A stretch of 64,000 nucleotides of DNA from Macrostomum lignano (lineage: Eukaryota). The first letter of the stretch is position 1. Every line of letters starts with the position of its first letter. Where the stretch lies: the NCBI GenBank assembly GCA_002269645.1, contig NIVC01002217.1:77099-141098 (forward strand), given 5' to 3'. Below, piece after piece: positions 843 through 46,659 of the stretch. The translations under genes and the position numbers were made by a program. The notes under the pieces were generated by a model, which ran no database searches, was not told where the DNA came from, and saw only the letters and a program-made list of their open reading frames with translations.

Positions 843-3459
843 ATGGGGCTACTACAGCTACAGCCGCCATCCGCATTCAGCATCAGTGCGGACCCCCACA
901 CCGTCAGCAAGCGCTGGACAGAGTGGGCCACCACACTAAAGCGATTCCTGGCAGCATCAGGAATCTCGGACGACGCCCAGAAGCAGGAAATCCTCCTGTA
1001 CACCGCGGGAAAAGAGGTTGCAGACATCTTTAAAGAGATCTCAGAGTCGCGTCCCGCCACTGACCAGCCGGAGCAGCAAACGCTCGATTCACTCATAGCG
1101 GCGCTAACTCAGCACTTTCAAGGACGCGACAATGTGGTGTTCACCCGGTACCGATTCCGCCAGTGCGCGCAGCTGGACGGGGAAGCCATCGACAGCTGGT
1201 ACAACCAACTGTGCAACGCGGCTGAGGCCTACCAGTTCGGCGAGCTGCGTCAGTCCCTCATCCGCGACCAGATCGTCGCCTGCTGCCGCAGCGAATCCCT
1301 CCGAAAGCGGCTGCTCAACGTGCCCAACATCAGCCTCCCCGAGGCCCTCCAGCTGGCGAGAACAAACGAAGCAGCCAGCCAACAAGCGGCCATCATGGAG
1401 CGCTCGGCAGCCGGACCAGCTGAAGAAGTGCATGCGGCTCGCGGCAAGCGCTCCACCAGGCGCCCGCCAGCCAGCCCGGCCGACAAATGCCTGCGGTGCG
1501 GAGAGCCCGGCCACCGCACTTGCAACCGGGCCCAAGGCAAGCGCTGCAGCAACTGCGGCAAGCTGCACTACCTGGCGAAGGCCTGCCTAAGCGGCCGCGC
1601 ACGCATCAACATGGCAGAGCCTGAGCCAGAGGAACCAGCAGTGGCGCACCTGGAGGAGGCGGCATTCTCCAGCCTCGACCCCAGCCGCAAAAGCGCCACC
1701 TTCAAAGCGGTCATCAACGGCTCAAACGTACCCATTCTGATCGACAGCGGTGCGAGCTGCAATGTGCTTAGCCAGCGGACCCTTCATCTAACTGGAGCAC
1801 CCGAGCGGGCGTTTCAGCTCAAACACACAAGGATCTATACTCTCGGAGCAGCGAGGCCCTTGACACCGCTGGCCAGATCACTCTGCACACGAAGATCAAC
1901 GGCAACTCGGGGAGTGTGCTTCATCGTCATCAGAGAAGACTGCATCACAATTCTAGGTCGCGAAACAAGCACGCAGATGGGGATGCTGAGGTCGGACCGC
2001 CGGCCGAGACAGCTCTCACCCCCGGGCTGACACCAACAGTCAACGACCAGCACCTTCCGCAAGACCTGCGACTGTCATCGATCATGAAGGAGTTCAGCGA
2101 CAGGTTTCAAGAAATCGGCTGCATTAAGGGCGTCTCAGTCAGCATCCAGCTGAAGGAAGAAGCGGTGCCAGTCTGCCACCCTCCGTCTCGAGTTCCGGTG
2201 CATCTTCGAACCGCCGTGGAAAAGGAGCTGAAGGACCAGCTAGCAGCCGGCATCCTGGAGCGAGTGACGGGGCCCAGCGCTTGGAGTTCACGCATGGTGG
2301 TCGTTCCAAAGGCCTCGCCAGGCGAGATCCGCATCACGCAGGATCCGAGGGACGTCAATAAGTACGTCATCCCAGAAAAACAGCCAATACCGACATTCGA
2401 AGAAGTCACCGACGAGATGGCCGGCTCCACCTATTTCTCCGAACTAGACGTTGCCAAGGCCTTTCACCAGATCGAGGTCAGCGAGGAGTCCCGGCAGCTG
2501 CTTACTTTCTCAACGCCTCTGGGCCTGCTCCGCCTCAAGCGCCTTTGCATGGGATTTACCTCAGCATCCGAAATCCTACAGCGCGTCATGACATCTATCC
2601 TGAGCGGTTTGAGAGGCGTGCGGTCGGTCCACGACGACATCATTATCTTCGCAAGCACCATAAAGGAGCACAACGAGAGGCTGCCTGCCTTGACAGGCTG
2701 CGCCAACACAACGTGACTCTGAACCCCCCCCCCAAATGCCGCATTGCAACCCAGCAGGCCGACTTCCTGGCCATGCGCTTCTCGGCGGGCGGAATCCAAA
2801 CGACCGAGGAAAAGCTGGAGGCTGTGGCCAACTTCAAGCGACCAGAAAATGCAACGGAGGTGCGGTCCTTCCTCGGACTCGTCACATTCGTAGCCCGCGT
2901 CATCCCAAACCTCGCCGACAAAGCGAGGCCACTTCGAGAGCTGACCAAGAAGAGCGTGAAATGGTCGTGGGGCCCACAGCAAGCCTCAGCCTTTCAGTTA
3001 ATCAAGCTGTCGATCGCTCACAGCACGACCTTCTTCAACAAGAACTGCGAGACCAGGTTGATCGTCGGCGCCAGCCCGACCGGCCTCATGGCGATCCTCG
3101 CCCAGGTGCAACCTGGCGGCCTCACCAGGCCAATCGCCTACGCCAGCCGCAGCCTCAGTGACACCAAGCAGCGCTACTCGCAGACAGAGAGGGAGGCACT
3201 GGCCGTCAAATTTGGTTGCTTCAAGTTCCACCACTACCTTAGCGGCTGCCCAAAGTTCAAAGTCATCACCGACCACAAGCCGCTGGTCAGCCTGCTCAGC
3301 CCCGGCTCGCGGCCCCCGCCGCGGATCGAGCGCATGGCACTTCGGCTGCAGGATCTCCACTTCGAAGTCACCTACCAGCCGGGCGCAGACAACCCGGCAG
3401 ATGTCCTGAGCCGCCAGCCACGTCCAAACACCGCCAAACACCGCCTAACAGCATGCTAA
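843..3459 (+). mobile_element. Degenerate Ty3/Gypsy LTR retrotransposon gag-pol (gag, zinc knuckles, protease, RT, RNase H), frameshifted and truncated before integrase
   Basis: Three overlapping ORFs (843-2030, 1916-2716, 2545-3459) carry in order: gag with Cys/His knuckles CLRCGEPGHRTC and CSNCGKLHYLAKAC; aspartic protease LIDSGASCN; RT motifs (SELDVAKAFHQI, RLCMGFTSASEILQ, VHDDIII); RNase H (PIAYASRSLS..QRYSQTEREALAV, VITDHKPL, NPADVLSR). Frame changes near ~1870-2030 and ~2690-2735 (next to a poly-C run). GC-rich sequence stops abruptly at ~3455 with no integrase or 3' LTR. 5' LTR not delimited. Confidence 0.93.
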
Positions 3460-11079: not shown

Positions 11080-14000
11080 ATGGATCGCGATTCGTTCCCA
11101 TTCTACTGCGAGCTCTGCTCGGTGGGCATGATGACTCGGGAAGGCTACGAAGTGCACGTGCTTGGCAAGCGACACCAGGAGCGGATGCTGCCGCCGGATA
11201 AACGGCCAGGCGCCGTCTCCGCCGCATCCGGCTCCACTGAGGAGCCTGAACTGGTTAAGTCGGACTTTGTATTCCTGCATCGAATCGCCTGTCAGCTTAG
11301 AGAGCTGCTGGATCCGCTGGGATCGCGTGTGCTTAACTACGCGGAGCTGCCTGGCAACTGCTGTGTAGCCTTGTTTGACCAGTTGGACTCCAGCCAATGG
11401 GATGACACCTATCGTCACCTGTCCGCCCGCTCCACCGCCTGCCCTGTCTACATACAAAACGGCGTCTGCGGCAGTCGTCAGCCGGTTGACAAACGCCGTT
11501 TGAATTTCGTGTTTCTGTACAACCTACCAGACAATCTCACTCCCGCTGACGTATCCGACGGTGCCGCTGGCGGCCGCATTCCTGTCGACGATGTGCGCAT
11601 TGTTGAACGCCTGGGCGACGCCCGTGCCGCTTTTGTCCGAGTGCCGACTAACCCGGCCGATCGTACCGAAATCATCAACCGGCTGAGCTCCTCTTCAGAC
11701 GGCTTCTCCGTCTTTGAGCTGTGGGCTCCAGCTGAGTCGCTTCAGTCGCCTTCGTCGACTCCGCCGCCGGCGCCGCTACAACAGCATCTGCAGGCCCAGC
11801 CAGCCCAGCCAATGATGATTTTTAACCAAGTAGCTCAGGCGCATTATCCTCATCCGCTAGTAACATTTCAGCAGGCCCAATACTCTCATCCTGCGCAATA
11901 CATGCAGTATCCTGCCAGTGTGGCGCCCCCTATAGCGCCGCAGTCTTATTGGAACGCGCCACCAATGGCGGCGGTAATGCCACCCGGAATGTTTGGCCAT
12001 CAGTTTAACTATCCGCCGCCGCCGATAAGCTCAGGAATGATGCCGGGGCAGCAGTCATTCGATGCTGCTTACTCGGCCTCTATGGCGGCCTGGCAACAGC
12101 AACAGCAGCAGCAACAACAGCAGCAACAGCGAATGCTTATGCAGCAGCATCGCCAGCAAGCACCAAGACCAGCTTCGCTCTGGGTTGACTCTACACCCGA
12201 TCAGGATCGCGATCGTAATCGGCATCTAGGCCGACTCAACACCGGCGGCAGACGATCGCCGTCCAGATCACCCAGTAGATCGGGGCGTCAGTCTAACAAC
12301 GAGTCTAAATCGCCGAGCGGCTTGGAGCACCGCCGCTTTGGCAGATCCAGCTCCCGTAGCGATTCGCGGCGTCACCGACGCGATCGGGCCGATGATCGAT
12401 CAGCGTCCAAGGGTGACGAATCTCGACATCGACGCCACACGGAATCGCGGCGATCCCGACATGACAACCGGCGATCTGGGTCTCGGCAAAGCAATTCTCG
12501 TCATCGCCATAGCCGCCGGTCTCGCTCCAAAAGTTCATCATCGCGACATCGCAAACGCACCAGCGAGGCTGACAGATCAAAATCACCGAATAGTAGCTCT
12601 TTGCGGCGGCGAATCAGCGGGTCATCTTCGCGTCGCTCGGACGCAGCTACCGCGCCTGTCAAACGGTCGGCAGAGCAATCGAACGGTGCAGCAAGCACCG
12701 CAGCCCAGCTGCAGCCTGACCGGCAAAGGAAAACTGACAAGCAGTCAGACGACTCGAACTTGTATTTGTTGGGCTTGAAAATGATTCAGCAGACAGATTC
12801 GCTTCTCAGGCAGCCTGCTATTGGAAGCAGCAATTGTGTTTCTGCTGCCTCCTCTGCCATTTCAATATCATCAGATAGTTGGTATATTTCTAGTGGACTG
12901 GAGACGTACTATGTTATTTCAGGTTTTCCCAAAGAAACTGATTGCATTTGGTTAAGTAATCGTATTCAAGTTATATTTCAGGACTGTTATGCAAGTTGCT
13001 ATGCGGTAGTGCATCCGTCCACTGGTTCCAAAGCCGTTGTAGTGGCACCTTTGCCTGGCAAGTCTTTGTCAAAGTCTCGGTTGATGGATGTGGCACAATT
13101 TTTGGCCAGATCGGCTGCGAAAAAGTTGAAGTTATATTCGAATGACGAGAAATCGTTGACTGCAGACGAATTTCTAGACGACGAATTCGAGGTTGTTTGG
13201 GAGAAGGAGCTCCCAATTATTAAAGATAGTGATGCGACAGATTCTGACTCTGGGGGTATGCCGGATGCGGATGCTGAGTTCAGGGTAGAATCTGAAGCGG
13301 AGTCGACGGAGTCAAACGGACTGGGAGATGTCAGTACAACTCAATCTGCGATGAGCGATGTAAATTCTAAACATGTCGAAGAAGCTAAGGCAGAAATTAA
13401 TCCAGTCGAGTCAGCTGTAGAGAGCATGGAAACAACATCGGCTGAGTCAAATTCAGCAGCAGAGACGAAAACAATTGAATTGAATGCTATTGCTGTTGAA
13501 TCCGCTGATGAAGCGACCGTTAGAGATGCTGAAGCAGCAGGCCATTCTATTGAAGTCAGTTGCGTTGAGAACCTGAAAGCTGAAGTTAATGCGTTGATTG
13601 CAGCCGACCAGAATGCAGAACTCGCCGACTCGATGGAAACAGTGGAAGAGGCAGTGAGCACAGCGAATCCGAGTATGTCGGCAGATAATGTAGTAGACGC
13701 ACCCGGCAGAGATGTGACAACCGATCCAATTGGCGCTCTATTTGAGACAGTCATCGACGAAAAAACTTCTGCCAGCAACGTCTTTGACGAAGCTAACTTT
13801 TCTAAGGATGTGTCAGTGACCGACGCGAAGCCTAGTGTAGTTAACCATTCACTTGTTATTTCAAATGAAGCAGGTGCAAGTAAAAAGCCTGAGGCTTCTA
13901 ATCCTGTAGATCAGATCACCGAGTCTGTTGAAAAACCGGACAGAAACAAGACGGAGAAGGTTGAATCGAATAGCGATGGTCAGACAGTTGAGTCTATGCA

Positions 14001-14958
14001 ATTAGGTACTATTGATGTAGCAGCTACTGACAAAGCTATCGAAGGTGTTGAGGGAAAAATCGAGACTACTAGTGAAACACCGTCTGACACTAATGAGTCG
14101 GCTTCAGTCGACATCATAGTTCGAGAGGTAGCCGAAGCTCTTCTAGACGCTGTTGTTCGAACGGTTGAGTCCGGTTCAACTAATAAGCCCCATAATCCAA
14201 GCGAAGAGGCGGCGATGGAAGCCGAAAAGCTACCTACCTCTGCGACTACTCAAGCAGAGACTAGCGCTCAACCAACAGACAAGTCGGCTCATGATTCCGT
14301 TGTCGGTTCGTTGTGCCTACGCGAATACAGTACAGTCACGTGTCACGAGTTTGCTTCAAGCCTGCCAGACAGGTTTCTGTTCTGGCCTACCAGACAACAG
14401 GCGCCTTTCTTATTAATTTGGAATCTGCCGACTCAACTGCCACTATCCCAGCTGATCGGCTCCCTACGCGAAATGATTCCTCGGCTGCGCAGCGTCCACG
14501 TGCCACGCGACCCGTTGCAGCCCGAGCTTAACTGCGGCTATTGCGTCATCCGCTTTCAATGCGATGCCGAGGATGCTTTCGGCCGCTGTCTAGGCGCCAG
14601 AGACAAGGTTCGAACATTTGCTCGAGAAAATCGACAACTTCGTGGCAATAAAGCCTGGCAAACTAAATTACGCGCTATACCAGCCCAGATGCGCGAGATT
14701 TGCCATGTGCCGCCGTTCAGTTTCCCCTGTCATAATCTGATTTCCTGGGTAGCCTCAGTTGAACCGAGCACTGAACGGTGCGTCATTGACAGATCGCCAT
14801 TCGCCTGTCCCTGTCACCCGGTATGCGAGGAGCTGGCGCCAGATAGCCAAAAATTTGTGCAGTTCGCCGAACTAGTGCAGCAGGCCAGGGCCGCCTACCC
14901 GGTTGACACTGTGCGCGCTAATCTGCGCTCCTATCTGGATTCGGTCATGTTTCGTTGA
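11080..14958 (+). CDS. Intronless 1292-aa putative nuclear RNA-binding protein: U1/matrin-type C2H2 finger, RRM-like domains, P/Q-rich, RS-rich and acidic regions, C-terminal RRM + Cys/His module
   Basis: Uninterrupted 3.9-kb ORF. CELC-x12-HVLGKRH matrin/U1-type finger. RNP2-like FVFLYNLP and FLLIWNLP. Poly-Q and RSPSRSPSR/RHRRSRSKS low-complexity tract. AATAAA at ~14998 after the stop. Confidence 0.88.
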   Translation: MDRDSFPFYCELCSVGMMTREGYEVHVLGKRHQERMLPPDKRPGAVSAASGSTEEPELVKSDFVFLHRIACQLRELLDPLGSRVLNYAELPGNCCVALFDQLDSSQWDDTYRHLSARSTACPVYIQNGVCGSRQPVDKRRLNFVFLYNLPDNLTPADVSDGAAGGRIPVDDVRIVERLGDARAAFVRVPTNPADRTEIINRLSSSSDGFSVFELWAPAESLQSPSSTPPPAPLQQHLQAQPAQPMMIFNQVAQAHYPHPLVTFQQAQYSHPAQYMQYPASVAPPIAPQSYWNAPPMAAVMPPGMFGHQFNYPPPPISSGMMPGQQSFDAAYSASMAAWQQQQQQQQQQQQRMLMQQHRQQAPRPASLWVDSTPDQDRDRNRHLGRLNTGGRRSPSRSPSRSGRQSNNESKSPSGLEHRRFGRSSSRSDSRRHRRDRADDRSASKGDESRHRRHTESRRSRHDNRRSGSRQSNSRHRHSRRSRSKSSSSRHRKRTSEADRSKSPNSSSLRRRISGSSSRRSDAATAPVKRSAEQSNGAASTAAQLQPDRQRKTDKQSDDSNLYLLGLKMIQQTDSLLRQPAIGSSNCVSAASSAISISSDSWYISSGLETYYVISGFPKETDCIWLSNRIQVIFQDCYASCYAVVHPSTGSKAVVVAPLPGKSLSKSRLMDVAQFLARSAAKKLKLYSNDEKSLTADEFLDDEFEVVWEKELPIIKDSDATDSDSGGMPDADAEFRVESEAESTESNGLGDVSTTQSAMSDVNSKHVEEAKAEINPVESAVESMETTSAESNSAAETKTIELNAIAVESADEATVRDAEAAGHSIEVSCVENLKAEVNALIAADQNAELADSMETVEEAVSTANPSMSADNVVDAPGRDVTTDPIGALFETVIDEKTSASNVFDEANFSKDVSVTDAKPSVVNHSLVISNEAGASKKPEASNPVDQITESVEKPDRNKTEKVESNSDGQTVESMQLGTIDVAATDKAIEGVEGKIETTSETPSDTNESASVDIIVREVAEALLDAVVRTVESGSTNKPHNPSEEAAMEAEKLPTSATTQAETSAQPTDKSAHDSVVGSLCLREYSTVTCHEFASSLPDRFLFWPTRQQAPFLLIWNLPTQLPLSQLIGSLREMIPRLRSVHVPRDPLQPELNCGYCVIRFQCDAEDAFGRCLGARDKVRTFARENRQLRGNKAWQTKLRAIPAQMREICHVPPFSFPCHNLISWVASVEPSTERCVIDRSPFACPCHPVCEELAPDSQKFVQFAELVQQARAAYPVDTVRANLRSYLDSVMFR

Positions 14959-15589
14959 CGGCATTTCTATTTTCATTCGTTTTTTAAACGCGCTTCTAAT
15001 AAACTGGTACGAGTAAGATGATAAAACGGTAAATACAACCGCTAAAAAAGAATGCAAGACTTGTCAACTCGATATTGTTTCACAAATATCTGCTTGAACT
15101 AAAACGTTTTTTTCATAGTTTTTCACTACTACTGGTACCAAGAGAAGAATTCCCTCTGAAGCAATTTTTTTCCTGCGCCCTAAATGTAAAATTCCAGAAC
15201 ACCAGCGAATCGTGTAGAAATACCACAATGTAAAAATGTTTTACGTATTGTACGTAGTTATTGAAAGTCTGTTGGGCCTACAATGGACAAGAGAACTCGT
15301 AGTCACATAGGCGACTATAGCGCTAGGCATTTCTGATATTTTATTGAACTGGGAAACTTAATTTCTTGAAGGAATGGTTGAATATCTTCTTAAAACGGTG
15401 CCTTGGTTGGCTTGTTAAATAATCTCAGACCACAGATTCTAGAATAACTTGATGAGCCACTCAGCACATTTGCGCGTAAGCTACTTTCAGTTCAGTAGTA
15501 GTATGCCAAAGGCTAATTTATTGGCCCTTACCCCCAGGCTTCAACCCTCCAACCGCGACTTTTCCACACTACCCCCGCCTCGCCCCGCC

Positions 15590-15890
15590 TCAATTGTTAT
15601 TGCCTTTCTCGGAATTCCGGCCTAAAGCTGCTATGCACATTTCAGTGGACTGGCAAATGTTAAATGTACATTATTTCTGATCCAATTAGCAAGTTGTTTA
15701 CGCCTGCAAGCTTGGGCTTCTAAACTTATCAAAGCCCCCCCCCCTGCCCCGCCCTAATTTTTATTGCCTTTCAGTATTCCAGCCTAAAGCTGCTATGTAC
15801 ATTTCAGTGGACTGGCCAACGTACATTATTGCTGAACCAATTAGATAGTTGTTTACGCCTGCAAGGTTGGGCTTCTTAACTTATCAAAGT
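15590..15890. repeat. Diverged ~162-bp tandem duplication
   Basis: GCCTAAAGCTGCTATG..CATTTCAGTGGACTGGC at 15620 and 15782, both followed by GTTGTTTACGCCTGCAAG..TGGGCTTC. Confidence 0.8.
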
Positions 15891-17204
15891 CATCTTAGCT
15901 GCCTTTATTTTTATAAAATAGCTCATGTATTCTTATTTGCTACTTAACTGAAAGTAGACAGCTGTTTTACTAAGTATATATGTCTGAGTGGCCCATCTAG
16001 TTATTTTAGTATCTGTGTTTCAGACTAAAAATAGCCAGGGAACTTCCTACTGGTAAAGATAGATATGTGCGCGTCCGATTCGACGAGAATAGAGTTGCCA
16101 AAGGCGATATTTTTGCCAATCAGTAAACATTCATTCGAATTCCGTTTCAAATTATATACTACTGAAGCACTGAATGTTTAACGCATATTGTTATACTCCA
16201 TATTGCTCTTACTCGTAAACTATTCATTATTTTGATTGTTTAACTATCCGCTAGCTTTCAATTTGCTTAGTAAACACAAGTAATAATAGCGAGGAGGACA
16301 ATGTGAATTAATGAAAGTTTTCGTTACGAAAGTTTAGCGCTAAGTTCACTTTAATCTTTCAACATATTGTGCAAGCTTTAAATACTCTTACGAGTCGAAA
16401 TGCGCTGGCTAGTGTATTTGTTGCATCATATTTTTGTATTGTATGATTATGCATTGCGTATTGTAATTGTAGTAACATCATATTTTGCTTTATCAGATAT
16501 TGTAACGCTGTAATCTTTGCGTTCACAATACATGCAGGCAACTGTTGTTAAATGAATGTTTGCGTTATATATAGTTGGAATTTTCGTAATATTATGCTAG
16601 CAATGTGTTCGAGTTCATTGTTTTCATATAGCGTTCTTTTTTATTTTAATGTGTTTTTAAGTTTTCGTATGTGAAAGACTAACAAAAAAAGACTTTGCTA
16701 GTTAGCAGCAGGGCTTTGAAGCTCTTAACTCGGTTAGCTTAAGTCTTGCATCAGCTATAGAGACTATACACAATATACTTCTACATTCTGCGCCAACTAA
16801 AATATATAATAGATACAATCTCAGCATCGTAGAATCTTTACAAGTACAATATATAATAATCTGCACATTGTATCTTGGAATCTGACCATTATAGAATCTG
16901 CACATTGTATCTTGGAATCTGACCATTATAGAATGTGATCATTGTAGAATCCGAATATTATAGAATCTGCACATTGTAGAATCTGAATATTATATAAAAT
17001 ATAATCTCACATTGTAGAACCAAGGACAACTTAAGTGGTAGGACGCAACACTCGAGTATCGTATAATTCAGTTGTCCTTGTGTAGAACCTGCACATTATA
17101 TCTTGGAATCCGAACATTATAGAATCTGTACATTGTGGAATCTGTACACGATAGAATCTGCACATTATAGAAACTGCACATTACGCTCGTATAGACTCCA
17201 CACG

Positions 17205-17958
17205 GAATCTGCACATTATAATGTAGATTCCCCATACAATATAATCTGCACATTATAATGTAGATTCCCCATACAATATAATCTGCACATTATAATGTAG
17301 ATTCCCCATACAATATAATCTGCACATTATAATGTAGATTCCCCATACAATATAATCTGCACATTATAATGTAGATTCCCCATACAATATAATCTGCACA
17401 TTATAATGTAGATTCCCCATACAATATAATCTGCACATTATAATGTAGATTCCCCATACAATATAATCTGCACATTATAATGTAGATTCCCCATACAATA
17501 TAATCTGCACATTATAATGTAGATTCCCCATACAATATAATCTGCACATTATAATGTAGATTCCCCATACAATATAATCTGCACATTATAATGTAGATTC
17601 CCCATACAATATAATCTGCACATTATAATGTAGATTCCCCATACAATATAATCTGCACATTATAATGTAGATTCCCCATACAATATAATCTGCACATTAT
17701 AATGTAGATTCCCCATACAATATAATCTGCACATTATAATGTAGATTCCCCATACAATATAATCTGCACATTATAATGTAGATTCCCCATACAATATAAT
17801 CTGCACATTATAATGTAGATTCCCCATACAATATAATCTGCACATTATAATGTAGATTCCCCATACAATATAATCTGCACATTATAATGTAGATTCCCCA
17901 TACAATATAATCTGCACATTATAATGTAGATTCCCCATACAATATAATCTGCACATTG
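17205..17958. repeat. 37-bp minisatellite (~20 near-identical copies), with degenerate related units from ~16800
   Basis: Unit TATAATGTAGATTCCCCATACAATATAATCTGCACAT, period 37. Junctions form the palindrome ACATTATAATGT. Confidence 0.97.
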
Positions 17959-18198
17959 TTGAAGCTACACGAAACAAAATTTTGAGCTGGAAATTTCTCA
18001 GAGGCATAAAATTGCAATAGCCTAGCCGTGTGTATGACCTTTGACGATACAAGTTTCGAGTTGAGCTGGGTGCTTGATATCATGCTGACCGTCTATTATT
18101 CCAGCTCAAAGATCGCATAGCGACAGACAGTGGCCCTGCTTCGCTGACAAACTTTCGAATAAAGAGATTTACTATAACCATATATCAATCGGACCCTA

Positions 18199-21100
18199 AT
18201 GCTTGCCGACAGCAATAACAATAAGAAGGCGGATGAGTCGGATAGCACTCAAGCCCAGCCTGCTCCAACTGTGGACTCCAACAGCAATAGCAGTAGCGAT
18301 TCTGAACAGCTGCTACTCCTATCTGATTTCGTGCTGCTTCCTCCCGATATCCCGGATGCCAAGAGTAGCAAGGCAGTTGCCGCCGATGCCAATCATAGGC
18401 AGTACGTGAGGTACTCGGCCAGCCTGGGCGATCGCACGGTACTGCTATTCGATGCCGTGCCAACAGACCAGTGGCCGGCTGTGCTACACCAGCTCGGACC
18501 GGGCGCCTGTCCGCTCTATTTCAGCATTGGTGACAATCAGCAGCAGCCGGCCGAAGCCCTGTCGGATGTCAGCCTGATGCTGGCCGAATGGAACGATCCG
18601 GACGCTATGCGACTAGGCGAAGACTGTTGGCCAGCCGATCAGCTTGTTGATTTTGCGCCCCTGCCGGCGCCTACGCAGTTAACCGACGCGCCAGCGGACG
18701 CCATGAGTGATGAAGCTGCTGTTGAAGCGCCGGCCACCGCGCTGGCTCTGCTGAAGCCGGGCACCGATCGGGCTAAGCTGACTAGCCGGCTAGCCAATGC
18801 CGGGGCTCGAACTCACAACCTGTGGCCAGTGCCGGTGTCGGCCGCGCTTCGATTAGACAGTCGGCTGAATGGGCAGCGACGGCGGCGCCCTCTTGACGAC
18901 AACATTGGCGACGCCAATGATGAAGCTTTTGCGCCAGACCCTGTCGGCGAGGCCGAGTCAGAGAGCAAGCGGCCTCGCCTATCGATAGATGCTAATCAAC
19001 CTCTATGGCAGGTGCAGCCGGGAAAGGTAACCTCCGGAAGCATCCCGCAGGTTTCATCTCCTCCTCCCGCAGGTTTCATCTCCTCCTCCCGAAGGTTTCA
19101 GCTCCCCTCCTTGGGTCTCATCTCCCCCTCCTTAGGGTTACATCTTTCCCTTCCTTGGGGTTTCATCTCTTCTCCTTCCTTGTGCGTTTCATCTCTCCCC
19201 TCCTTAGGTCTCATCTCCTCCTCCTTAGGGTTACATCTCTCCCTTCCTTGGGGTTTCATCTCTCCGCTCCTTGGGGTTTCATCTCTCCCCTCCTTGGGGT
19301 TTCATCTCTTCTCCTTCCTTGTGCGTTTCATCTCTCCCCTCCTTGGGGTTTCATCTCCCCCTCCTTGGGGTTTCATCTCTCCGCTCCTTGGGGTTTCATC
19401 TCTCCCCTCCTTGGGGTTTCATCTCTCCCCTCCTTGGGGTTTCATCTCTTCTCCTTCCTTGTGCGTTTCATCTCTCCCCTCCTTAGGTCTCATCTCCTCC
19501 TCCTTAGGGTTACATCTCTCCCTTCCTTGGGGTTTCATCTCCCCCTCCTTGGGGTTTCATCTCCCCCTCCTTGGGGTTTCATCTCTCCCCTCCTTGGGGT
19601 TTCATCTCTCCCCTCCTTGGGGTTTCATCTCTCCCCTCCTTGGGGTTTTATCTCTTCTCCTTCCTTGTGCGTTTCATCTCTCCCCTCCTTGGGGTTTCAT
19701 CTCCCCCTCCTTGGGGTTTCATCTCTCCGCTCCTTGAGGTTTCATCTCTCCCCTCCTTGGGGTTTCATCTCCCCCTCCTTGGGGTTTCATCTCTCCCCTC
19801 CTTGGGGTTTCATCTCCCCCTCCTTGGGGTTTCATCTCTCCCCTCCTTGGGGTTTCATCTCCCCCTCCTTGGGGTTTCATCTCTCCCCTCCTTGGGGTTT
19901 CATCTCCCCCTCCTTGGGGTTTCATCTCTCCCCTCCTTGGGGTTTCATCTCCCCCTCCTTGGGGTTTCATCTCTCCCCTCCTTGGGGTTTCATCTCTCCC
20001 CTCCTTGGGGTTTCATCTCCCCCTCCTTGGGGTTTCATCTCTCCCCTTTGAGTTTCATTTTTTCCTTCCCTGAGAGGTTTTGTCTCTTCCCTCCCGTAGC
20101 TTTCATCTCTTCCTTATGGCTCTATTCTACTCTTCCTTCCGAAAATCGCCTCCAACCTCTAAAAAGTCAAGCACTCATAAGCACGAATTGTTTCAATCAT
20201 TTCCATACAGCAGGCCTATCTGCGCATCACCGGCCTGAGACGTAGCGCCGATCCCGTGCAGCTAACGGACCTCACTATGCACCAGCTGGCCGGCCTGGCT
20301 CTCACCGGCTATTCATTCTATCCGCCCGGGCCAGCGGACTGCGGCAAAGCTGTACTATGCACTTTTAAACCCGATGTGCCGGTCAGTTCCATAGAATCAG
20401 CGGCTGACGATCTGGTTCGCATGTTTGAACGGCAGGGCCTGCAGGATTCCGAGCGGCGCCCGGTGACTGCCAGTGTTGTCCTGCCCGACAGTGTCGGTGC
20501 CAGTAGTCCGGCCAATCGCATGCCGGATAGCTTTGGCGACAGTTTTGTCTTGTTGCAAAAGGAGACGGCTGCCGATCCTGTGGGTTTGGGTTTGGGTTAG
20601 GGTTCGGGTTAAGGTTTGGGTTAAGGTTTGGGTTTGGGTTAGCGTTTAGGTTTGGGTTTTGGTTTGGGTTTGGGTTAGGGTTAGGGTTTGGGTTAGGGTT
20701 TAGGTTTGGGTTTGGGTTTGGGTTTGGGTTAGGGTTTAGGTTTGGGTTTGGGTTTGGGTTTGGGTTAAGTTTAGGGTTTGGGTTTGGGTTAAGTTTAGGG
20801 TTTGGGTTTGGGTTAGCGTTTAGGTTTGGGTTTTGGTTTGGGTTTGGGTTTGGTTTTGGGTTAAGGTTAGGGTTTGGGTTTGGGTTAGGGTTTGGGTTAG
20901 GGTTCGGGTTAGGGTTTAGGTTTGGGTTTTGGTTAGGGTTTAGGTTTGGGTTTTGGTTTGGGTTTGGGTTAGGGTTCGGGTTCGGGTTTAGGTTTGGGTT
21001 TTGGTTAGGGTTTAGGTTTGGGTTTTGGTTTGGGTTTGGGTTTGGGTTAGCGTTTAGGTTTGAGTTTTGGTTTGGGTTCGGGTTAGGGTTTAGGTTTGGG

Positions 21101-24100
21101 TTTTGGTTAGGGTTTGGGTTTGGGTTAAGGTTTGGGTTTGGGTTTAGGTTAGAGTTAGAGTTTAGGTTAGAATTTAGGGTTTAGGTTAGGGTTTAGGGTT
21201 TAGGTTTAGGTTAGAGTTTGGGTTAAGGTTAGGGTTTTGATTTGGGTTTGGGTTAAGGTGTGGGTTAAAGTTTGGGTTAGGAGAGGGTTTACTGAATTTT
21301 TGAGTTGCAGGTTGAATCTATATTATAAAAGTACGCTGTTGGGATATGGAGGGGATATTTTTAAACTAAGATTTGAGAGAATTTTATATTTTGGGATAAG
21401 AGCTGGTTTCCTAGTCTAGTAACTATATGAGGAATTTCATTGTGTTGTAAATTCATAAAGAAAATTAAAAAATCAATCCGCAGGTGTTTCTACTAATCTG
21501 GAACCTACCCAGCGATCTAAGCGCCAATTTAATAGTGCACAGAATGCGCCGATTCCTGCCTATGGCGCGCAGCTTCTACTGTCCCCGGCCAGTCCCCGCC
21601 AGCAGCGGCCAGCTGCGCAACTGCGGCTTCGCTGTGGCCAGATTTAATCGGCCGGCTGATTGCGCTCACGCTATGGAGCGGATGAGATCGGCCACCCAGC
21701 AGCAGCTGATGGCCATTTTCTGCTCCGGACTCATCCGAGTTAGCTATGCCGCTTTGCTGGTGAGGCTTAATGGAAATTTGGTCATTAGAATTGACCGGAA
21801 ATGGTTGCTAGGTGGGTCATTAGAATTGACCGAAAACGGTTGCTAGGGGGGGGGGTCATTAGAATTGACCGGAAATAGTTGCTAGGTAGGTCATTGGCAC
21901 GGACCGAAAACGGTTGCTAGTTAGGTCATTGGCACTGACTGGAAACGGTTGCTAGGTAGGTCATTGGCACTGACCGGAAACGGTTGCTAGGTGGGTCATT
22001 AGAATTGACCGGAAGCGGTTGCTAGGTGGGTCATTAGAATTGACCGGAAATAGTTGCTAGGTAGGTCATTGGCACTGACCGAAAACGGTTGCTAGGTAGG
22101 TCATTGGCACTGACTGGAAACGGTTGCTAGGTAGGTCATTGGCACTGACCGGAAACGGTTGCTAGGTGGGTCATTAGAATTGACCGGAAGCGGTTGCTAG
22201 GTGGGTCATTAGAATTGACCGGAAATAGTTGCTAGGTAGGTCATTGGCACTGACCGAAAACGGTTGCTAGGTAGGTCATTGGCACTGACCGGAAACAGTT
22301 GCTAGGTAGGTCATTGGCACTGACCGGAAACGGTTGCTAGGTAGGTCATTGGCACTGACCGGAAACGGTTGCTAGGTAGGTCATTGGCACTGACCGGAAA
22401 CGGTTGCTAGGTAGGTCATTGGCACTGACCGGAAACGGTTGCTAGGTAGGTCATTGGCACTGACCGGAAACGGTTGCTAGGTAGGTCATTGGCACTGACC
22501 GGAAACGGTTACTTGTTCGGTAATTGACTCGTAGCGGTTGCTAGGTGGATCACTATTTTTGAAGTGAAAATATTGCTCCACACCACTAAAGTGATAATAT
22601 TCCTGGAAACCACACTGGCTTGGACTTTATAATACATGTAAGCCTAATCTACTCGTAGTATCGTTAGCAAAAGCAACCCTCTTCGCCCCCCCCCTCGCCA
22701 GGAAACCTGCCACGTGCCGCCAATGTTCACCTTTCCCTGCCACAATCTTCTGCCTTGGCTGATCAACGCCAATCAGAACAGCGAAAATCCGCTCGACTTC
22801 CTACTGGACTCGCCGCCCTATTCGCCGGCTCCGTTTACCTGCCCCTGCCATCCGGACGCCATGCCGTCCGCACCCGCCGGCGGCATGTTCGACTGGCTGG
22901 CCTTCACGCTGCGAATGCGACTGCCGGCTGACGGCGACCCCATCCAGACGGTCAGGTAAGAGACCGCCGTATGAACCCTCTCTTCTACCCCCCCCCCCTG
23001 CATGACCGTCTCTTCTACCCCCCGCACCCGCCGGCGGCATGTTCGACTGGCTGGCCTTCACGCTGCGAATGCGACTGCCGGCTGACGGCGACCCCATCCA
23101 GACGGTCAGGTAAGAGACCGCCGTATGAACCCTCTCTTCTACCCCCCCCCCTGCATGACCGTCTCTTCTACCCCCCGCATGACCGTCTCTTCTACCCCCC
23201 CCCTGCATGACCGTCTCTTCTACCCCCCCTGCATGACCGTCTCTTCTACCCCCTGCATGACCGTCTCTTCTACCCCCCCCCTGCATGACCGTCTCTTCTA
23301 CCCCCCCCTGCATGACCGTCTCTTCTACCTCCCCTGCATGACCGTCTCTTCTACCCCCCCCTGCTTGACCGTCTCTTCTACCCCCCTGCATGACCGTCTC
23401 TTCTACCCCCCCCCTGCATGACCGTCTCTTCTACCCCCCCCTGCATGACCGTCTCTTCTACCCCCCCCCCTGCATGACCGTCTCTTCTACCCCCCCCCTG
23501 CATGACCGTCTCTTCTACCCCCCCTGCTTGACCGTCTCTTCTACCCCCCCCCCCCCTGCATGACCGTCTCTTCTACCCCCCCTGCTTGACCGTCTCTTCT
23601 ACCTCCCCCCCTGCATGACCGTCTCTTCTACCCCCCCCCCTGCATGACCGTCTCTTCTACCCCCCCCCTGCATGACCGTCTCTTCTACCCCCCCTGCATG
23701 ACCGTCTCTTCTACCCCCCTGCATGACCGTCTCTTCTACCCCCCCCTGCATGACCGTCTCTTCTACCCCCCTCCCGCATGACCGTCTCTTCTACCCCCCC
23801 CCTGCATGACCGACTCTCCTACCCCTCGCATGACCGTCTCTTTTACCCCCCCCCCTGCATGATCGTCTCTTCTACCCCCCCCTCCCGCATGACCGTCTCT
23901 TCTACCCCCGCATGACCGTCTCTCTTGTACCCCCATAGAGATCTATATAGCTGTATTTGATGAAGATTTCGACTATCTATCTTCTCTAACCCTCCAATTA
24001 CTAACTTACCCAACCGGCCTGTAACATTCGCAGGCTGCTGTCGGATCTGATGTTGGAAAGCGAAGAGCTGGTGCCAATTCACGTCACGGCCGCCTGGCTC

Positions 24101-26569
24101 TCTTCGGCATCGAGTGCAAAAACATCGGCATGGGCTGCGGCGACATCGCGGCTGCACCCGGTCAACCGGCACGGCAACGCCGCCCTGCTGCTGGCGCTGA
24201 ACAATGGCGAAGTTGACGATGCCAACAACAACAGCAGCAGCAGCAGAACTTCGAGTTGCTCTCGCACGGAGGAAGACGCCACTACATTCGACCGGTCCGC
24301 GGAGCAGTGGCGCCTGCTGCCGCCGAGCCGTCCGCTCCGCTGCTGGCAGCTGACCGGCTTGCCTACTGAAGCCGACCGGACGGAATTAGCCGTGGCTATT
24401 CGACGCGCTTTCCCTAGCCGAGTGGCCGACAACCTGTACATTGCCGGGCACGCCTCTTTGAACTGCCAGCTGGCCGTCCTGCGCCTGCCAGTCTCCATGT
24501 CTGCCAAGGTGGCCGAGTCCGCCGCCAGCCGCCTTTCCAAGGAGCTGCCCGGCCAGTCTGAGCTGCGCCTTCGCCAATGGTGCGGCAAACCGACTCGACT
24601 GGCCGACCTGCGGCCAACTCTGGCGCCGTTCTGCCCCGTGCCAGACGGTTGCGCGACTCGCTGCCAGTTCATCCTGGCCTGGAATCTGCACCGCCAATTG
24701 GCCACTGCCGAGGTGGCAGCCAGATTTCTGGATCGGTTCCCGCTGGTGAGATGCTTTCTGCTTTTGTTTTCGTTTTGTTTTATTGCCGCATGACCCCCCC
24801 CCAGTTTTCTCTAGAGGAGAGCAGCTGACCCCATTGACATCCCTTGGATGGCTCCACTATTGTAGTTAAGCAATAAGTAACCCTAATTCTTCAAACCCAA
24901 TTTCTAAACCCTACCTAAATCCCATCCGAAACCCCATCCTAAACTTTATCCTAAACTCTATCCTAAACCCCATCTTAAACCCCAGTTCCTGAACCCCATC
25001 CTAAACCCTACCTGAACCATCCTAAACGTTATCACAAACCCCATCTTAAACCACATCTTAAAACCATCCTAAACCCCATCCTAAACCTCATCCTAAACCC
25101 CATCTTAAACCCCAGTTCCACCCCAGTTCCTAAACCCCATCCTAAACCTTACCTAAACGCCATCCTAAACCTTACCTAAACCCGATCCTAAACCTTACCT
25201 AAACGCCATCCTAAACCTTACCTAAACCCCATCCTAAACCTTACCTAAACCCCATCCTAAACCTTATCCTAAACCCCATCTTTAACCTTACCTAAACCCC
25301 ATCCTAAACCTTACCTAAACCCCATCCTAAACCTTACCCTAACCCCATCCTAAACCTTACCTAAACCCCATCCTAAACCTTACCTAAACCCCATCCTAAA
25401 CCTTACCTAAACCCCATCCTAAACCTTACCTAAACCCCATCCTAAACCTTATCCTAAACCCCATCTTTAACCCCAATTCCTAAACTCTAACCAGTCGATT
25501 GCCGTGCTCCCCGCATGCTCTCTCCCTCAACTTGCAGATTCGCAGCGTTTTCGCTCCAACTGCGCCAGCCAGTTTGGCCAATGGCGCTAACAATCTCGGC
25601 TATTGCGTTCTGCGCTTTGATCGGCCGCGCGACTGCGCCAGAGCCCTGGCCGCTCTGCGCTCCCTGTCCGCAGCCGACCTGGCCAATCTCTGCTGCCCGG
25701 CCGGGCCGGCCTATTTCACCCTGTGCGAATGGACGACATCTGCTGCCTGCCGCCGTTTCAGTTCCCCTGTCACAATCTGCTGCCTTGGCACGGCCGCCGC
25801 TTCCCCGAGCACGTGAGCTGAGCTGTCTGCGTCTGTCTGCTTTTTTATTACCTGGCGCTCTCTGGCTTGCCTACTTGTCTCATTTGCTCCTTATCTTTTG
25901 TACGAATACTTAGTTTGACATGCATGCCACCTTGAGAATCGCCTCTGACACTCACAGTGCCTTGAGAATCGCCTTTGACACTCACAGTACCTTGAGAATC
26001 ATCGCTTTAATCATCTACAAACTTTTGAAAATCGCCTTTGACGCCCGTCTCCCCCTTGAGAATCGCCTTTGACGCCCGTCTCCCCCTTGAGAATCGCCTT
26101 TGACGCCCGTCTCCCCCTTGAGAATCGCCTTTGACGCCCGTCTCCCCCTTGAGAATCGCCTTTGACGCCCGTCTCCCCTTGAGAATCGCCTTGACGCCCG
26201 TCTCCCCTTGAGAATCGCCTTTGACGCCCGTCTCCCCTTGAGAATCGCATAAGAGGCGAAGTGCATAAGCCCTGAAACATACGAGTAAAATGCGAACTCT
26301 TGCCGAACAGCCGCGCACCAACCAACCCGTGTCCGCAGGCCCGCGCCCTCTGCCTGGAGTCCTGGCAGCGGCCCTTCCGCTGCATCTGCCACCCGAACGC
26401 GGCCTCATATTCGCCGGCATCTGTAGATCAGCTGATCCGGCTTAGCCGCCTAATCCGCATCGCTGGCTCCCCTAGCAACAGCGCCTGCAGTCCGGAGGGC
26501 CTGCGCGACTCGCTGTCCGAGCTGCTCGAAGCTGCCGAGTCTGACTTGGCCGAGTCCAGCCAGCAGTAG
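18199..26569 (+). CDS. 7-exon ~981-aa paralog of the 11080 gene, with RRM-like domains and two copies of the RRM + Cys/His module; one 1-nt frameshift in exon 6
   Basis: Exons with GT/AG and consistent phase: 18199-19026, 20211-20579, 21484-21759, 22702-22955, 24034-24745, 25538-25812, 26339-26569. Junctions read QPGK|[13 protein letters not shown]|[12 protein letters not shown]|[13 protein letters not shown]|LLSDL, RFPL|IRSVF, FPEH|ARALC. In exon 6 the frame shifts at ~25690-25730 (..ADLANL.. to ..[23 protein letters not shown]). Upstream exons cannot be excluded. Confidence 0.8.
19045..20050. repeat. Pyrimidine-rich ~21-25-bp intronic minisatellite
   Basis: Unit ~CCTCCTTGGGGTTTCATCTCTCC fills intron 1 of the 18199 gene. 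It accounts for the spurious PWGFISP ORFs. Confidence 0.95.
20580..21280 (+). repeat. Degenerate telomere-like repeat (GGGTTT/GGGTTA/AGGTTT)n in intron 2
   Basis: About 700 bp of hexamer variants including TTAGGG. It begins exactly at the inferred GTGGGT donor. Confidence 0.92.
21775..22550. repeat. 35-bp intronic minisatellite
   Basis: Unit GGTAGGTCATTGGCACTGACCGGAAACGGTTGCTA, period 35, ~22 copies with variants. Confidence 0.96.
22970..23930. repeat. ~27-bp C-rich intronic minisatellite with variable poly-C, containing a duplicated exon end
   Basis: Unit CTGCATGACCGTCTCTTCTAC(C)n. 22871-23024 is repeated at 23025-23178. Confidence 0.95.
24890..25490. repeat. 23-bp telomere-like C-strand minisatellite in intron 5
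   Basis: Unit CCTAAACCCCATCCTAAACCTTA, degenerate toward the 5' end. Confidence 0.93.
25930..26250. repeat. ~31-bp intronic minisatellite
   Basis: Unit GACGCCCGTCTCCCCCTTGAGAATCGCCTTT, ~7 full copies plus degenerate leaders. Confidence 0.93.
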
Positions 26570-44811: not shown

Positions 44812-46659
44812 ATGCAGTCGATACAGAAGCCGCAGGTGCCGAAGGTCTACCGGCTGCAGATCGAAGGCGTCGGCGCCTCGGCAGGCGAGTACGCGTACAC
44901 CGCCATCCGGCCGTACTTCCCCGCCCTGCACCCCAACACGCTGTGGATCATCAACCGCGTGCGCTCGGGCGACGCCACGCCTTTGGTGAATATTCTGAAG
45001 ACCCGAGAGCGGATGAACATCTTCTTCAAGTACATGTACTTTCAAATCTTGGACAAGCCGTCGCTCTACAATCCAAAGTCGCCCATGGACCGGCCGATGT
45101 TCAACGAGAAGGCCTACCTGTTTCTCAACATCTTCTCGGTGGCGCTCTACTTCAAATGCGAGACAATCGTTCGCGTCCTGGCGCCGATTCGGGTTGGCAA
45201 AATCGACAACGCGGCCAGCTACGAGGCCATGAGCGAGGTGTCCATTCCGCAGTACGCCACCTACGTTCACGACCACTCGTTTGGCGACCTCATCACTTTC
45301 AACATCCCCACGATCATGATGCGTAGGGAGGCCTATTTCGCCATCCCGTCGCTGTTCCGTTTCGGCTCTTGGGCGCCGCGCAGCCAGTTCTGCATCTACT
45401 ATTTCCGGCGGAACTACAATTTCTCTAGGAAATTCAGCGACTGGATGGAATACGCCTGGTCGCTGCTAGACGAACGGCCCTACACGAAAATCTCTATGCT
45501 AGTTAACATGCTCAACAAGGCTGCTCACGTCAATTTCTACCTGGGCGACAAAGTGTTCTACCAGCCCATTAACTGTCGCTATTATAACGCTCCGTGGGCT
45601 TCGCCAGATCAGGACGAACGGGCGGTGATTGTGTATCGGTCCTACCCGCGCCGCATGCTGTGCAAACTCTTCCTGCACAAGGACCCGTTGAGAATCATGC
45701 CCCAGATCATACCGTTTGTTCGCGTCTTCCAGAAGGAGCGCTACTTTGTGTCGCAGACGTCAAAATCGCTCAATCCAGAATTTCGATTGGTGATTCTCAG
45801 CAGCCTGGAGGAGCGCTTCATCAACCTGTCGCCCATAGTGAACTCCACCGAAATCAATTCGTCTGACTACGTTGAGCAGAACGGCCACAAGACGTCGATC
45901 TACGATTACGACAACATTCTCGCCTTGCTGCACTACTTCCTGGTGCTGGCCGCCGACAGAAATGTCGAATCGCTGAAGCACAGCATCATCCACCTCATCA
46001 TGGACATCCTGACAGACACCAGCCTGTTGTACGTCTTCTCCAAGGAGCCCGCTGTAAACATCTCCTACTACATGTCGCACCTTATCGACGGTCCGTTCAT
46101 CCAGCCGAACGATCTGCAGCACATGCTGAGGAACATCCCAACTCTGCTGATGTCGTCCACTGTCGCCGACAAGAGTTTCCCGCCGTTCCTGCAGACCTCT
46201 GGCAGCAAGTACGACAAGCAGCAGCCAGCCGCCACCGAGCTGTTCAAGAACAAGCTGCCCCGGCTGTGGGAGCGCGGCCGCTTTGCCAAGGCCATCCAGC
46301 AGATGATGAAGTATCGAATCGATCTGGACGACAAAGCCGGCGTCACCACGCTGGAGTACTGCAAGTGGAAGAACGAGTACCTGGAGGCCAGGCTGCGCCT
46401 CAGCATGCAGACCATGAACCAGGAGCAGCAGACCATCCCGGCCGAGCGGGTGGACCAGCGCCTCACCTCCGACGACGAGGGCGGCACGCACGGCTCGTCC
46501 AGGGGCTGGCGGGCCTATCCGCCCAGCTACTTCAGGGACGCCAAAGAGTTCATGGTTAAAAAGCAGAAGGACGCCACCAAGGTGAAGAAGAAGGCCAGGA
46601 AGAATTTCATCGACCTCTGGACAATAGACGAGCTAGAGGTGAAGAAGTCAGCCAAGTGA
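44812..46659 (+). CDS. Intronless uncharacterised 615-aa protein
   Basis: 1.85-kb uninterrupted ORF with strong C/G third-position bias and globular, aromatic-rich composition. Basic C-terminal tail. Acceptor-like TTTACTTTCTCAG 8 nt before the ATG. AATAAA at ~46995. No family recognised. Confidence 0.85.
   Translation: MQSIQKPQVPKVYRLQIEGVGASAGEYAYTAIRPYFPALHPNTLWIINRVRSGDATPLVNILKTRERMNIFFKYMYFQILDKPSLYNPKSPMDRPMFNEKAYLFLNIFSVALYFKCETIVRVLAPIRVGKIDNAASYEAMSEVSIPQYATYVHDHSFGDLITFNIPTIMMRREAYFAIPSLFRFGSWAPRSQFCIYYFRRNYNFSRKFSDWMEYAWSLLDERPYTKISMLVNMLNKAAHVNFYLGDKVFYQPINCRYYNAPWASPDQDERAVIVYRSYPRRMLCKLFLHKDPLRIMPQIIPFVRVFQKERYFVSQTSKSLNPEFRLVILSSLEERFINLSPIVNSTEINSSDYVEQNGHKTSIYDYDNILALLHYFLVLAADRNVESLKHSIIHLIMDILTDTSLLYVFSKEPAVNISYYMSHLIDGPFIQPNDLQHMLRNIPTLLMSSTVADKSFPPFLQTSGSKYDKQQPAATELFKNKLPRLWERGRFAKAIQQMMKYRIDLDDKAGVTTLEYCKWKNEYLEARLRLSMQTMNQEQQTIPAERVDQRLTSDDEGGTHGSSRGWRAYPPSYFRDAKEFMVKKQKDATKVKKKARKNFIDLWTIDELEVKKSAK

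Follow-up and report, generated by a model that had tools for sequence, protein, structure and literature searches.

A tandem gene pair in Macrostomum lignano

The stretch of flatworm nuclear DNA analyzed here, 64,000 nucleotides of contig NIVC01002217.1 (positions 77,099 to 141,098 of the forward strand) from the Macrostomum lignano assembly GCA_002269645.1 and referred to below as the window, contains two adjacent genes on the same strand, gene 1 and gene 2, whose products share a module of ~200 amino acids (aa). A first-pass annotation of the sequence had described three copies of this module, one in gene 1 and two in gene 2, and all motifs that it quoted are indeed in place. Pairwise BLASTP comparisons relate copy 1 to copy 2 (E=6e-21, 33% identity over 185 aa), copy 1 to copy 3 (E=6.5e-18) and copy 2 to copy 3 (E=1.4e-23), and a tblastn search over the window returned exactly three modules. 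The suggested homology of the N-termini was borne out as well: the similarity between gene 1 and gene 2 in this region is weak by itself (E=0.009 over 44 aa) but gains support when aligned with three more family members (P0003, P0007 and P0008), which have invariant S-D and L-W positions and common LFD..QW and P-L-Y blocks. We consider the paralogy of the two genes established. The coding stretches have a G+C content of ~50-57%, the stretches between them one of ~31-36%, and tandem repeats are abundant.

Gene 1 is organized as follows (positions in the window, strand):

11080-14958, +: gene 1, intronless coding sequence of 1292 aa, a single open reading frame (ORF) 98% identical to part of the M. 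lignano UniRef entry A0A1I8I8L7 (P0001)
11107-11175, +: U1-like/matrin-type C2H2 finger (C-x2-C-x12-H-x5-H, 'HVLGKRH'), with sub-cut-off matches to Pfam zf-met and zf-C2H2_jaz
11251-11463, +: conserved N-terminal 'SDF' domain (SDFVFL ... LFD..QW ... ACPVY), common to gene 2, P0003, P0007 and P0008
11500-11724, +: domain 1 resembling an RNA recognition motif (RRM-like domain 1; LNFVFLYNLP ... AAFVRV ... ELW), weak profile matches at positions 129-205
12094-12129, +: run of 12 Gln in a P/Q-rich tract that precedes the RS region
12220-12699, +: Arg/Ser-rich (RS) region (aa 381-540), with 26 RS/SR dipeptides, 26% Arg and 28% Ser
12877-13209, +: 'X' domain (..YYVISGFP..), a possible pseudo-RRM, from an alignment of nine units
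14362-14955, +: module copy 1, comprising an RRM, a Cys/His tail and a helical hairpin, with ribonucleoprotein motifs RNP2 (14407-14430) and RNP1 (14533-14556), from module BLASTP, alignment, AlphaFold2 (AF2) model and Foldseek
14587-14817, +: candidate metal ligands of copy 1, namely Cys1170 in helix alpha2 (14587-14589), His1218 (14731-14733) and Cys1243-x-Cys1245-His1246 (14806-14817)

The finger sequence of gene 1, CELCSVGMMTREGYEVHVLGKRH, fits the pattern C-x2-C-x12-H-x5-6-H and carries an H-x-x-G-K-x-H signature. Its Pfam scores remain below the respective cut-offs, both for zf-met (E=0.008, 16.9 bits; cut-off 21.2) and for zf-C2H2_jaz (E=0.016, 15.8 bits; cut-off 22.6), the latter family reaching 19.3 bits in P0003 (range E=0.0013-0.016). 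A C-x2-C-x12-H-x5-H finger is located at the N-terminus of gene 1, P0003 and P0008 alike, and a profile of the N-terminal region gave weak matches in the PDB to the U1-like fingers of Bud20, Prp9, KIN17 and ZNF622. Similarly, RRM-like domain 1 showed weak profile matches to the Mip6 RRM (E=0.026) and U1A. The P/Q-rich tract and the RS region are followed by a long acidic region. An RS region comparable to that of gene 1 is present in P0003 and absent from gene 2, P0007 and P0008. An X domain precedes every module of the family. The nine aligned X-domain units have a beta-alpha-beta-like hydrophobic pattern, and an X-domain profile had no significant match in the PDB.

Gene 1 has a second copy in M. 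lignano, P0001, which differs from it at 11 residues, all of which lie within the linker spanning aa 687-1053, with no differences over 194 compared module residues or over N-terminal residues 12-279. This confinement of the differences to the linker fits purifying selection on the domains. The name of P0001, 'CCHC-type domain-containing protein', stems from a gene model that wrongly joins a retrotransposon fragment to gene 1 and gene 2.

The exons of gene 2 were rebuilt by hand from the genomic sequence. The resulting model has seven exons (18199-26569), and all six introns are of the GT-AG type and keep the frame required by homology:

18199-19026, +: exon 1, N-terminal domain lacking the zinc finger and a degenerate RRM-like domain 1 (ORF, alignment with paralogues)
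20214-20579, +: exon 2, unit 1 X domain (AYLRITGL..) plus the strand leading into module copy 2
21484-21759, +: exon 3, RRM part of module copy 2 (VFLLIWNLP .. CGFAVARF .. DC)
22702-22955, +: exon 4, Cys/His tail of copy 2 (22735-22758; CPCHP at 22840-22854) and its first helix
24034-24745, +: exon 5, second hairpin helix of module copy 2, a linker, the unit 2 X domain (RCWQLTGLP) and the first part of module copy 3 (FILAWNLH)
25538-25812, +: exon 6, RRM strands beta2-beta4 and PCHNLLPW (25765-25788) of copy 3, frameshifted
26339-26569, +: exon 7, CICHP (26381-26395), helical hairpin and stop codon

Module copy 2 is thus spliced from 20535-20579, 21484-21759, 22702-22955 and 24034-24064, and copy 3 from 24620-24745, 25538-25812 and 26339-26566. 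As proposed earlier, both copies belong to a single gene with two units, because the 22955|24034 splice is in frame (AG|G, encoding Arg), the ten residues that follow it align with the second hairpin helix of the other modules, and the paralogues P0003 and P0007 likewise consist of two units. The first-pass annotation had also predicted a helical segment after each copy. Our model predicts a two-helix hairpin there, with the correction that in copy 2 the coding sequence of the final helix lies beyond the 22955|24034 splice. No hidden exon for a C2H2 finger was found upstream of gene 2 (14959-18260). The model P0002 uses a donor at ~20491/20492 and thereby loses a conserved strand; the donor 20579|20580 suits the homologues better.

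Exon 6 carries a 1-nucleotide frameshift at 25726/25727, a single-base deletion relative to the UniRef model P0004. The latter reads in frame across copy 3 as ...AYFTLCRMDDICC... (including FTLCRMDDICC), which implies one extra C at 25726/25727. The frameshift could reflect a mistake in the assembly or a genuine lesion confined to this allele.

The noncoding parts of the locus are rich in repeats. Each of the gene 2 introns (19027-20213, 20580-21483, 21760-22701, 22956-24033, 24746-25537 and 25813-26338) is filled for the most part by its own minisatellite, the repeat units measuring 23, 6, 35, 28, 12/23 and 31 bp, respectively. Two introns contain degenerate telomere-like arrays in opposite orientation, ~4 kb apart, one reading (TTTGGG/TTAGGG)n on the + strand (20581-21278) and the other (CCTAAACC...)n (24904-25485). 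In addition, a 154-bp direct duplication (22868-23179, +; 99% identical) has copied the last ~88 nucleotides of exon 4, together with the splice donor, into intron 4, creating a second donor at ~23110 that is probably unused; a tblastn match at 23033-23110 corresponds to it. The AT-rich spacer between the two genes contains a 37-bp tandem array of 20.3 copies with 100% identity (17206-17957), flanked by related 16/37-bp repeats; the array either arose very recently or was collapsed during assembly.

The predicted RRM fold and the Cys/His tail of the module

The first half of the module had been read as an RRM, and both sequence profiles and structure prediction agree with this assignment. A profile search against the PDB produced weak but uniform matches, all in register from beta1 to alpha2, to hnRNP Q (E=0.024), PABP1, TIAR, RNPS1, SRSF2, SRp46 and Pub1. 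An AF2 model based on the three copies in the window was unusable, with a predicted local distance difference test (pLDDT) score of 47, and was replaced by one based on an alignment of ten modules. This second model (pLDDT 77, predicted template modelling score 0.71) shows a predicted beta-alpha-beta-beta-alpha-beta core, made up of strands 16-20, 42-46, 60-65 and 104-109 and helices 28-38 and 69-93. Next come a beta-hairpin at 113-122 and a short helix covering H-N-L-I, then a loop that harbors the C-x-C-H motif (pLDDT 76-80) and, last, two further helices (162-178 and 181-197). When the model was compared with the PDB using Foldseek, the top 50 matches were all canonical RRMs, with eIF4B as the best (E=3.8e-4) and U2AF65 RRM2 and ELAVL1 reaching target-normalised template modelling scores of 0.77-0.79. 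The alignments span ~95-110 columns and thus cover the RRM only. A fold search in BFVD retrieved only weak matches to giant-virus RRM proteins. Membership of the module in the RRM superfamily is supported by the predicted fold, not by the Pfam threshold. The RNP motifs are in register, but of the three exposed aromatic residues of the consensus just the Tyr/Phe at RNP1 position 3 is retained; like the terminal R-F, it persists in nearly all members.

The automatic UniProt name of P0002, 'RRM_2 domain-containing', raised the possibility of a Mei2-type RRM_2 (PF04059). The RNP1 of the module, N-C-G-Y-A-V-x-R-F, resembles the Mei2 sequence KCNVGYAFINF; however, a similarity at the profile level was not borne out. 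The hhalign comparison with RRM3 of Schizosaccharomyces pombe Mei2 covered 16 columns at 2.8% probability, Pfam RRM_2 did not match any of the family modules, and there was no Mei2 chain among the PDB matches. We therefore rejected this candidate.

The RRM runs into a tail of ~90 residues. In line with the earlier claim that it falls outside the known zinc-finger classes, no Pfam family matched the tail at E<=10 in any of the ten modules, and a profile of the tail alone (alignment A3) hit no PDB chain at E<=10. Across the ten modules, eight columns are invariant (F65, C76, P122, H124, W129, C149, C151 and H152 in gene 1 module numbering), and five of them are Cys or His, a proportion that is improbable given a Cys+His content of 8% (binomial P=1.5e-4). 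All of these invariant residues are kept in the three copies of the window. The conservation pattern differs in part from the set of C, C-H and C-x-C-H that had been called invariant, a set whose lack of conservation among homologues had been named as evidence against a new family. The C-x-C-H motif is present in 10/10 modules, as is the His of 'PCHNL', whereas the Cys of 'PCHNL' is found in 6/10 (V, A or S in the others), the Cys of 'EICH' in 7/10 and the His of 'EICH' in 2/10. Conversely, the Cys of RRM helix alpha2 ('D-C'), absent from the earlier set, is conserved in 10/10. C76, H124, C149, C151 and H152 provide the at least four conserved Cys/His residues expected of a generic structural zinc site and, judged by their sequence pattern, the series Cys(alpha2)...His...C-x-C-H would suit a single tetrahedral zinc site and leave one residue over.

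Resemblances to HNH nucleases and to SWIM fingers were also considered and rejected: the residues do not fit in spacing and order, with a contiguous H-N-L and the C-x-C-H located 20-40 residues further on, and there was no profile match.

Family members and known relatives

Further members of the family were sought with a HMMER profile of the three window modules in an exhaustive search of 1.84 billion cluster representatives. This search yielded 11 proteins at E<=0.001. Three of them (P0001, P0002 and P0004) are models of the window genes; P0003, P0005/P0014, P0006, P0007 and P0008 match over the whole length of the module (E 1e-76 to 1e-9) and represent divergent paralogues. The other three proteins are a bacterial repeat protein, another spurious match to repeats and a generic RRM protein. 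Including the two window genes, the family comprises seven divergent paralogue groups, with module identities of 17-57%. All paralogues are labelled M. lignano, which agrees with the previous proposal of a lineage-specific family, and are annotated as 'hypothetical' or with automatic domain names. No relatives outside M. lignano were detected by the three-sequence profile search and a metagenome scan, in collections that lack most flatworm transcriptomes and those of other Macrostomorpha; in the metagenome scan, which used a pattern from alignment A1, none of 154 pattern matches was confirmed as a relative. A word-indexed protein search with the whole of gene 1 had P0001 as its sole match, for which an exact-sequence look-up gave no record. 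Searches of this kind with module copy 1 and with the ten-module alignment had no matches at all; they missed even known members and have no bearing on absence. A literature search by locus tag and keyword found no paper mentioning these genes. The proteins are already deposited as hypothetical proteins, and the family is uncharacterised. Several of its fragments bear misleading automatic UniProt names, namely 'RRM_2' (P0002), 'FZ domain' (P0004) and 'FIST domain' (P0020).

Duplication has occurred both within and between genes, as the first-pass annotation had concluded, yet the internal event is old rather than recent. P0003 (1072 aa) and P0007 each contain two modules, and module copies 2 and 3 of gene 2 pair with the first (44%) and second (40%) module of P0003, respectively, indicating that the internal duplication is older than the divergence of gene 2 from P0003. 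Among the other family loci fetched, none has a family neighbour within 10 kb, making the tandem pair in the window unique so far. Gene 1, P0003 and P0007 are intronless, whereas P0008 and P0014 contain introns. The first intron inside module copy 3 lies within ~3 residues of an intron in the module of P0014. Some of the gene 2 introns may thus be ancient, and retroposition or loss of introns may account for the intronless copies.

With regard to known proteins, the module is closest to the RRMs of serine/arginine-rich (SR) proteins and their like (SRSF2, RNPS1 and SRp46) as well as PABP1 and hnRNP Q, which it resembles in its predicted fold, its RNP2 ('..N-L') and its RNP1 ('G-Y/F-x-V-x-R-F'). 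The beta2 segment '..RS(F/V)xxPR' of the module additionally resembles 'DVYIPRD' of SR proteins. Unlike canonical RRMs, however, the module scores below the Pfam cut-off, has lost two RNP aromatics, contains an invariant alpha2 Cys and carries a ~90-residue Cys/His tail without counterpart.

Two groups of composite proteins provide points of comparison. In the first, represented by RBM20, Matrin-3 and ZNF638, a U1-like/matrin zinc finger is combined with an RRM and RS or acidic regions. We take the part types of gene 1, with its N-terminal U1-like C2H2 finger, RRM-type domains, RS region and long acidic region, to resemble this arrangement. However, the C-terminal finger of these proteins is a matrin-type C2H2 finger and not H...C-x-C-H, the 'SDF' and X domains of gene 1 have no counterpart in them, and none of them gave a sequence match in the PDB profile searches. 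The second group consists of composite RRM-zinc units, such as the RRM1-RanBP2 finger of RBM5 (PDB 7pcv), the RRM2-ZZ unit of CPEB and the ZnF-UHM-ZnF arrangement of U2AF35 (ZnF, zinc finger; UHM, U2AF homology motif). These units share with the module a Cys/His element directly after the RRM, and 7pcv appeared at Foldseek rank 34 through its RRM. Nevertheless, Cys(alpha2)...His...C-x-C-H fits none of the CCCH, CCHC, RanBP2 C4 and ZZ patterns, one of the candidate ligands is located inside the RRM, and the tail profile matched no RBM5, CPEB or U2AF35 chain in the PDB. Membership in either group is unsupported, because the ligand pattern differs and profile matches are lacking.

Interpretation and neighbouring features

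Based on these results, gene 1 and gene 2 are tandem paralogues from a multigene family of modular, RNA-binding-type proteins, so far seen in M. lignano only. Its typical layout starts with a U1-like C2H2 finger, a conserved N-terminal domain and RRM-like domain 1, continues with low-complexity or RS linkers and ends with one or two units of X domain plus module. The module itself is probably a divergent RRM with SR-protein-type RRMs as its nearest sequence relatives. It is predicted to run straight into an extension of ~90 residues, composed of a beta-hairpin, a P-x-H-N-x-x-x-W turn, a variable loop, the C-x-C-H motif and a two-helix hairpin. We infer that the alpha2 Cys, the invariant His and C-x-C-H may together hold one structural zinc, which would fasten the extension to the body of the RRM. 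Because of the U1-like finger and the RS region with its 26 RS/SR dipeptides, RNA processing is the likely context, and the family proteins could act as SR-related regulators of this process. On balance, we slightly favour this explanation, in which modular proteins of the RNA-processing type contain an SR-type RRM with a zinc-stapled extension. The more specific proposal that C(alpha2)...P-x-H-N-x3-W...C-x-C-H constitutes an undescribed zinc-binding extension, in which a ligand within the RRM locks a new subdomain in place, and that it defines a Macrostomorpha-restricted family of RNA regulators, expanded to seven paralogue groups in M. lignano and perhaps, as pure conjecture, serving stem cells or the germline, is put forward more tentatively, as an idea with somewhat less than an even chance of being correct.

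Several observations weigh against these interpretations. None of the modules exceeds the Pfam RRM_1 cut-off (best score 12 bits versus 20.7). RNP2 position 2 (Leu) and RNP1 position 5 (Val/Leu/Ile) are aliphatic instead of aromatic, and this degeneration of the RNP motifs leaves the canonical RNA-stacking surface incomplete. Cys151 and His152 are adjacent and thus unlikely to be bound to the same ion, rendering the assignment of ligands ambiguous. Moreover, module copy 3 is frameshifted in this assembly, and the apparent restriction to M. lignano rests on protein databases without most flatworm transcriptomes.

It is conceivable that the module is an RRM-fold protein-interaction domain, akin to a pseudo-RRM or UHM, in which the tail and the helices cover or replace the RNA-binding sheet, whether or not zinc is bound. 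In favour of such a role, aliphatic residues occupy two of the three canonically aromatic RNP positions throughout the family, the RRM_1 scores are sub-threshold, and the two helices predicted to follow the domain are reminiscent of occluded or extended RRMs. On the other hand, the Tyr/Phe at RNP1 position 3 and the terminal R-F have been retained in nearly all members, the combination of a U1-like finger with an RS region is typical of RNA-processing factors, and the nearest sequence relatives are SR-type RRMs that bind RNA. A protein-binding RRM is therefore the main rival to the SR-type reading, with which it is partly compatible, although we regard it as rather unlikely.

The proposed zinc site faces an alternative of its own, which we consider improbable. 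The invariant Cys and His residues could serve as buried packing or hydrogen-bonding residues, or as redox-sensitive or disulfide-forming residues, in an ordinary RRM flanking extension, rather than as metal ligands. The variable spacing of 20-40 residues between the His and C-x-C-H speaks for such a role, as does the dispensability of the three other Cys/His positions that had initially been listed. By contrast, chance composition is a poor explanation for Cys or His at five of the eight invariant positions, and the number of residues provided by C, H and CxCH matches a tetrahedral site plus one spare. In addition, nuclear or cytosolic RS-domain proteins rarely use disulfides. Like this non-metal role, the notion that the loci are decaying pseudogenes or transposon-derived ORFs lacking a cellular function is judged less likely than an SR-type RRM with a zinc-stapled extension, and in fact very improbable: it could invoke the frameshift in copy 3, the missing zinc finger and degenerate RRM-like domain 1 of gene 2 and the retrotransposon fragment upstream (843-3459), but the 1292-aa ORF of gene 1 is intact, 6/6 gene 2 introns keep GT-AG and frame, copy 3 is in frame in a second assembly, the differences between copies spare the domains, the family invariants persist in all three modules, and no module resembles a transposon protein.

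The RRM is the commonest RNA-binding domain in animals, and its specificity often depends on extensions that flank it. If true, a zinc site with one ligand contributed by the RRM core would represent a new way to build an extension of this kind. Regeneration and the germline can be studied genetically in M. lignano, and a lineage-restricted set of multiple paralogues encoding putative RNA regulators offers reasonable candidates for RNA interference screens in this species. Poor database entries can also be corrected on the basis of our analysis, including the model in which the retrotransposon is fused to gene 1 and gene 2, and others labelled 'CCHC-type', 'FZ domain' or 'RRM_2'.

Elsewhere in the window, the degenerate long terminal repeat (LTR) retrotransposon fragment at 843-3459 encodes, in three different frames, a gag segment with a CCHC knuckle, an aspartyl protease, a reverse transcriptase and an RNase H. 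Downstream of gene 2, an intact ORF of 615 aa without a Pfam match is located at 44812-46659 on the + strand. Finally, exons on the - strand at 53221-54674, near a long, repeat-filled stretch at 55306-57529, encode immunoglobulin-like domains similar to those of KY (Pfam Ig-like_KY; E=6.6e-13 and 4.4e-9).

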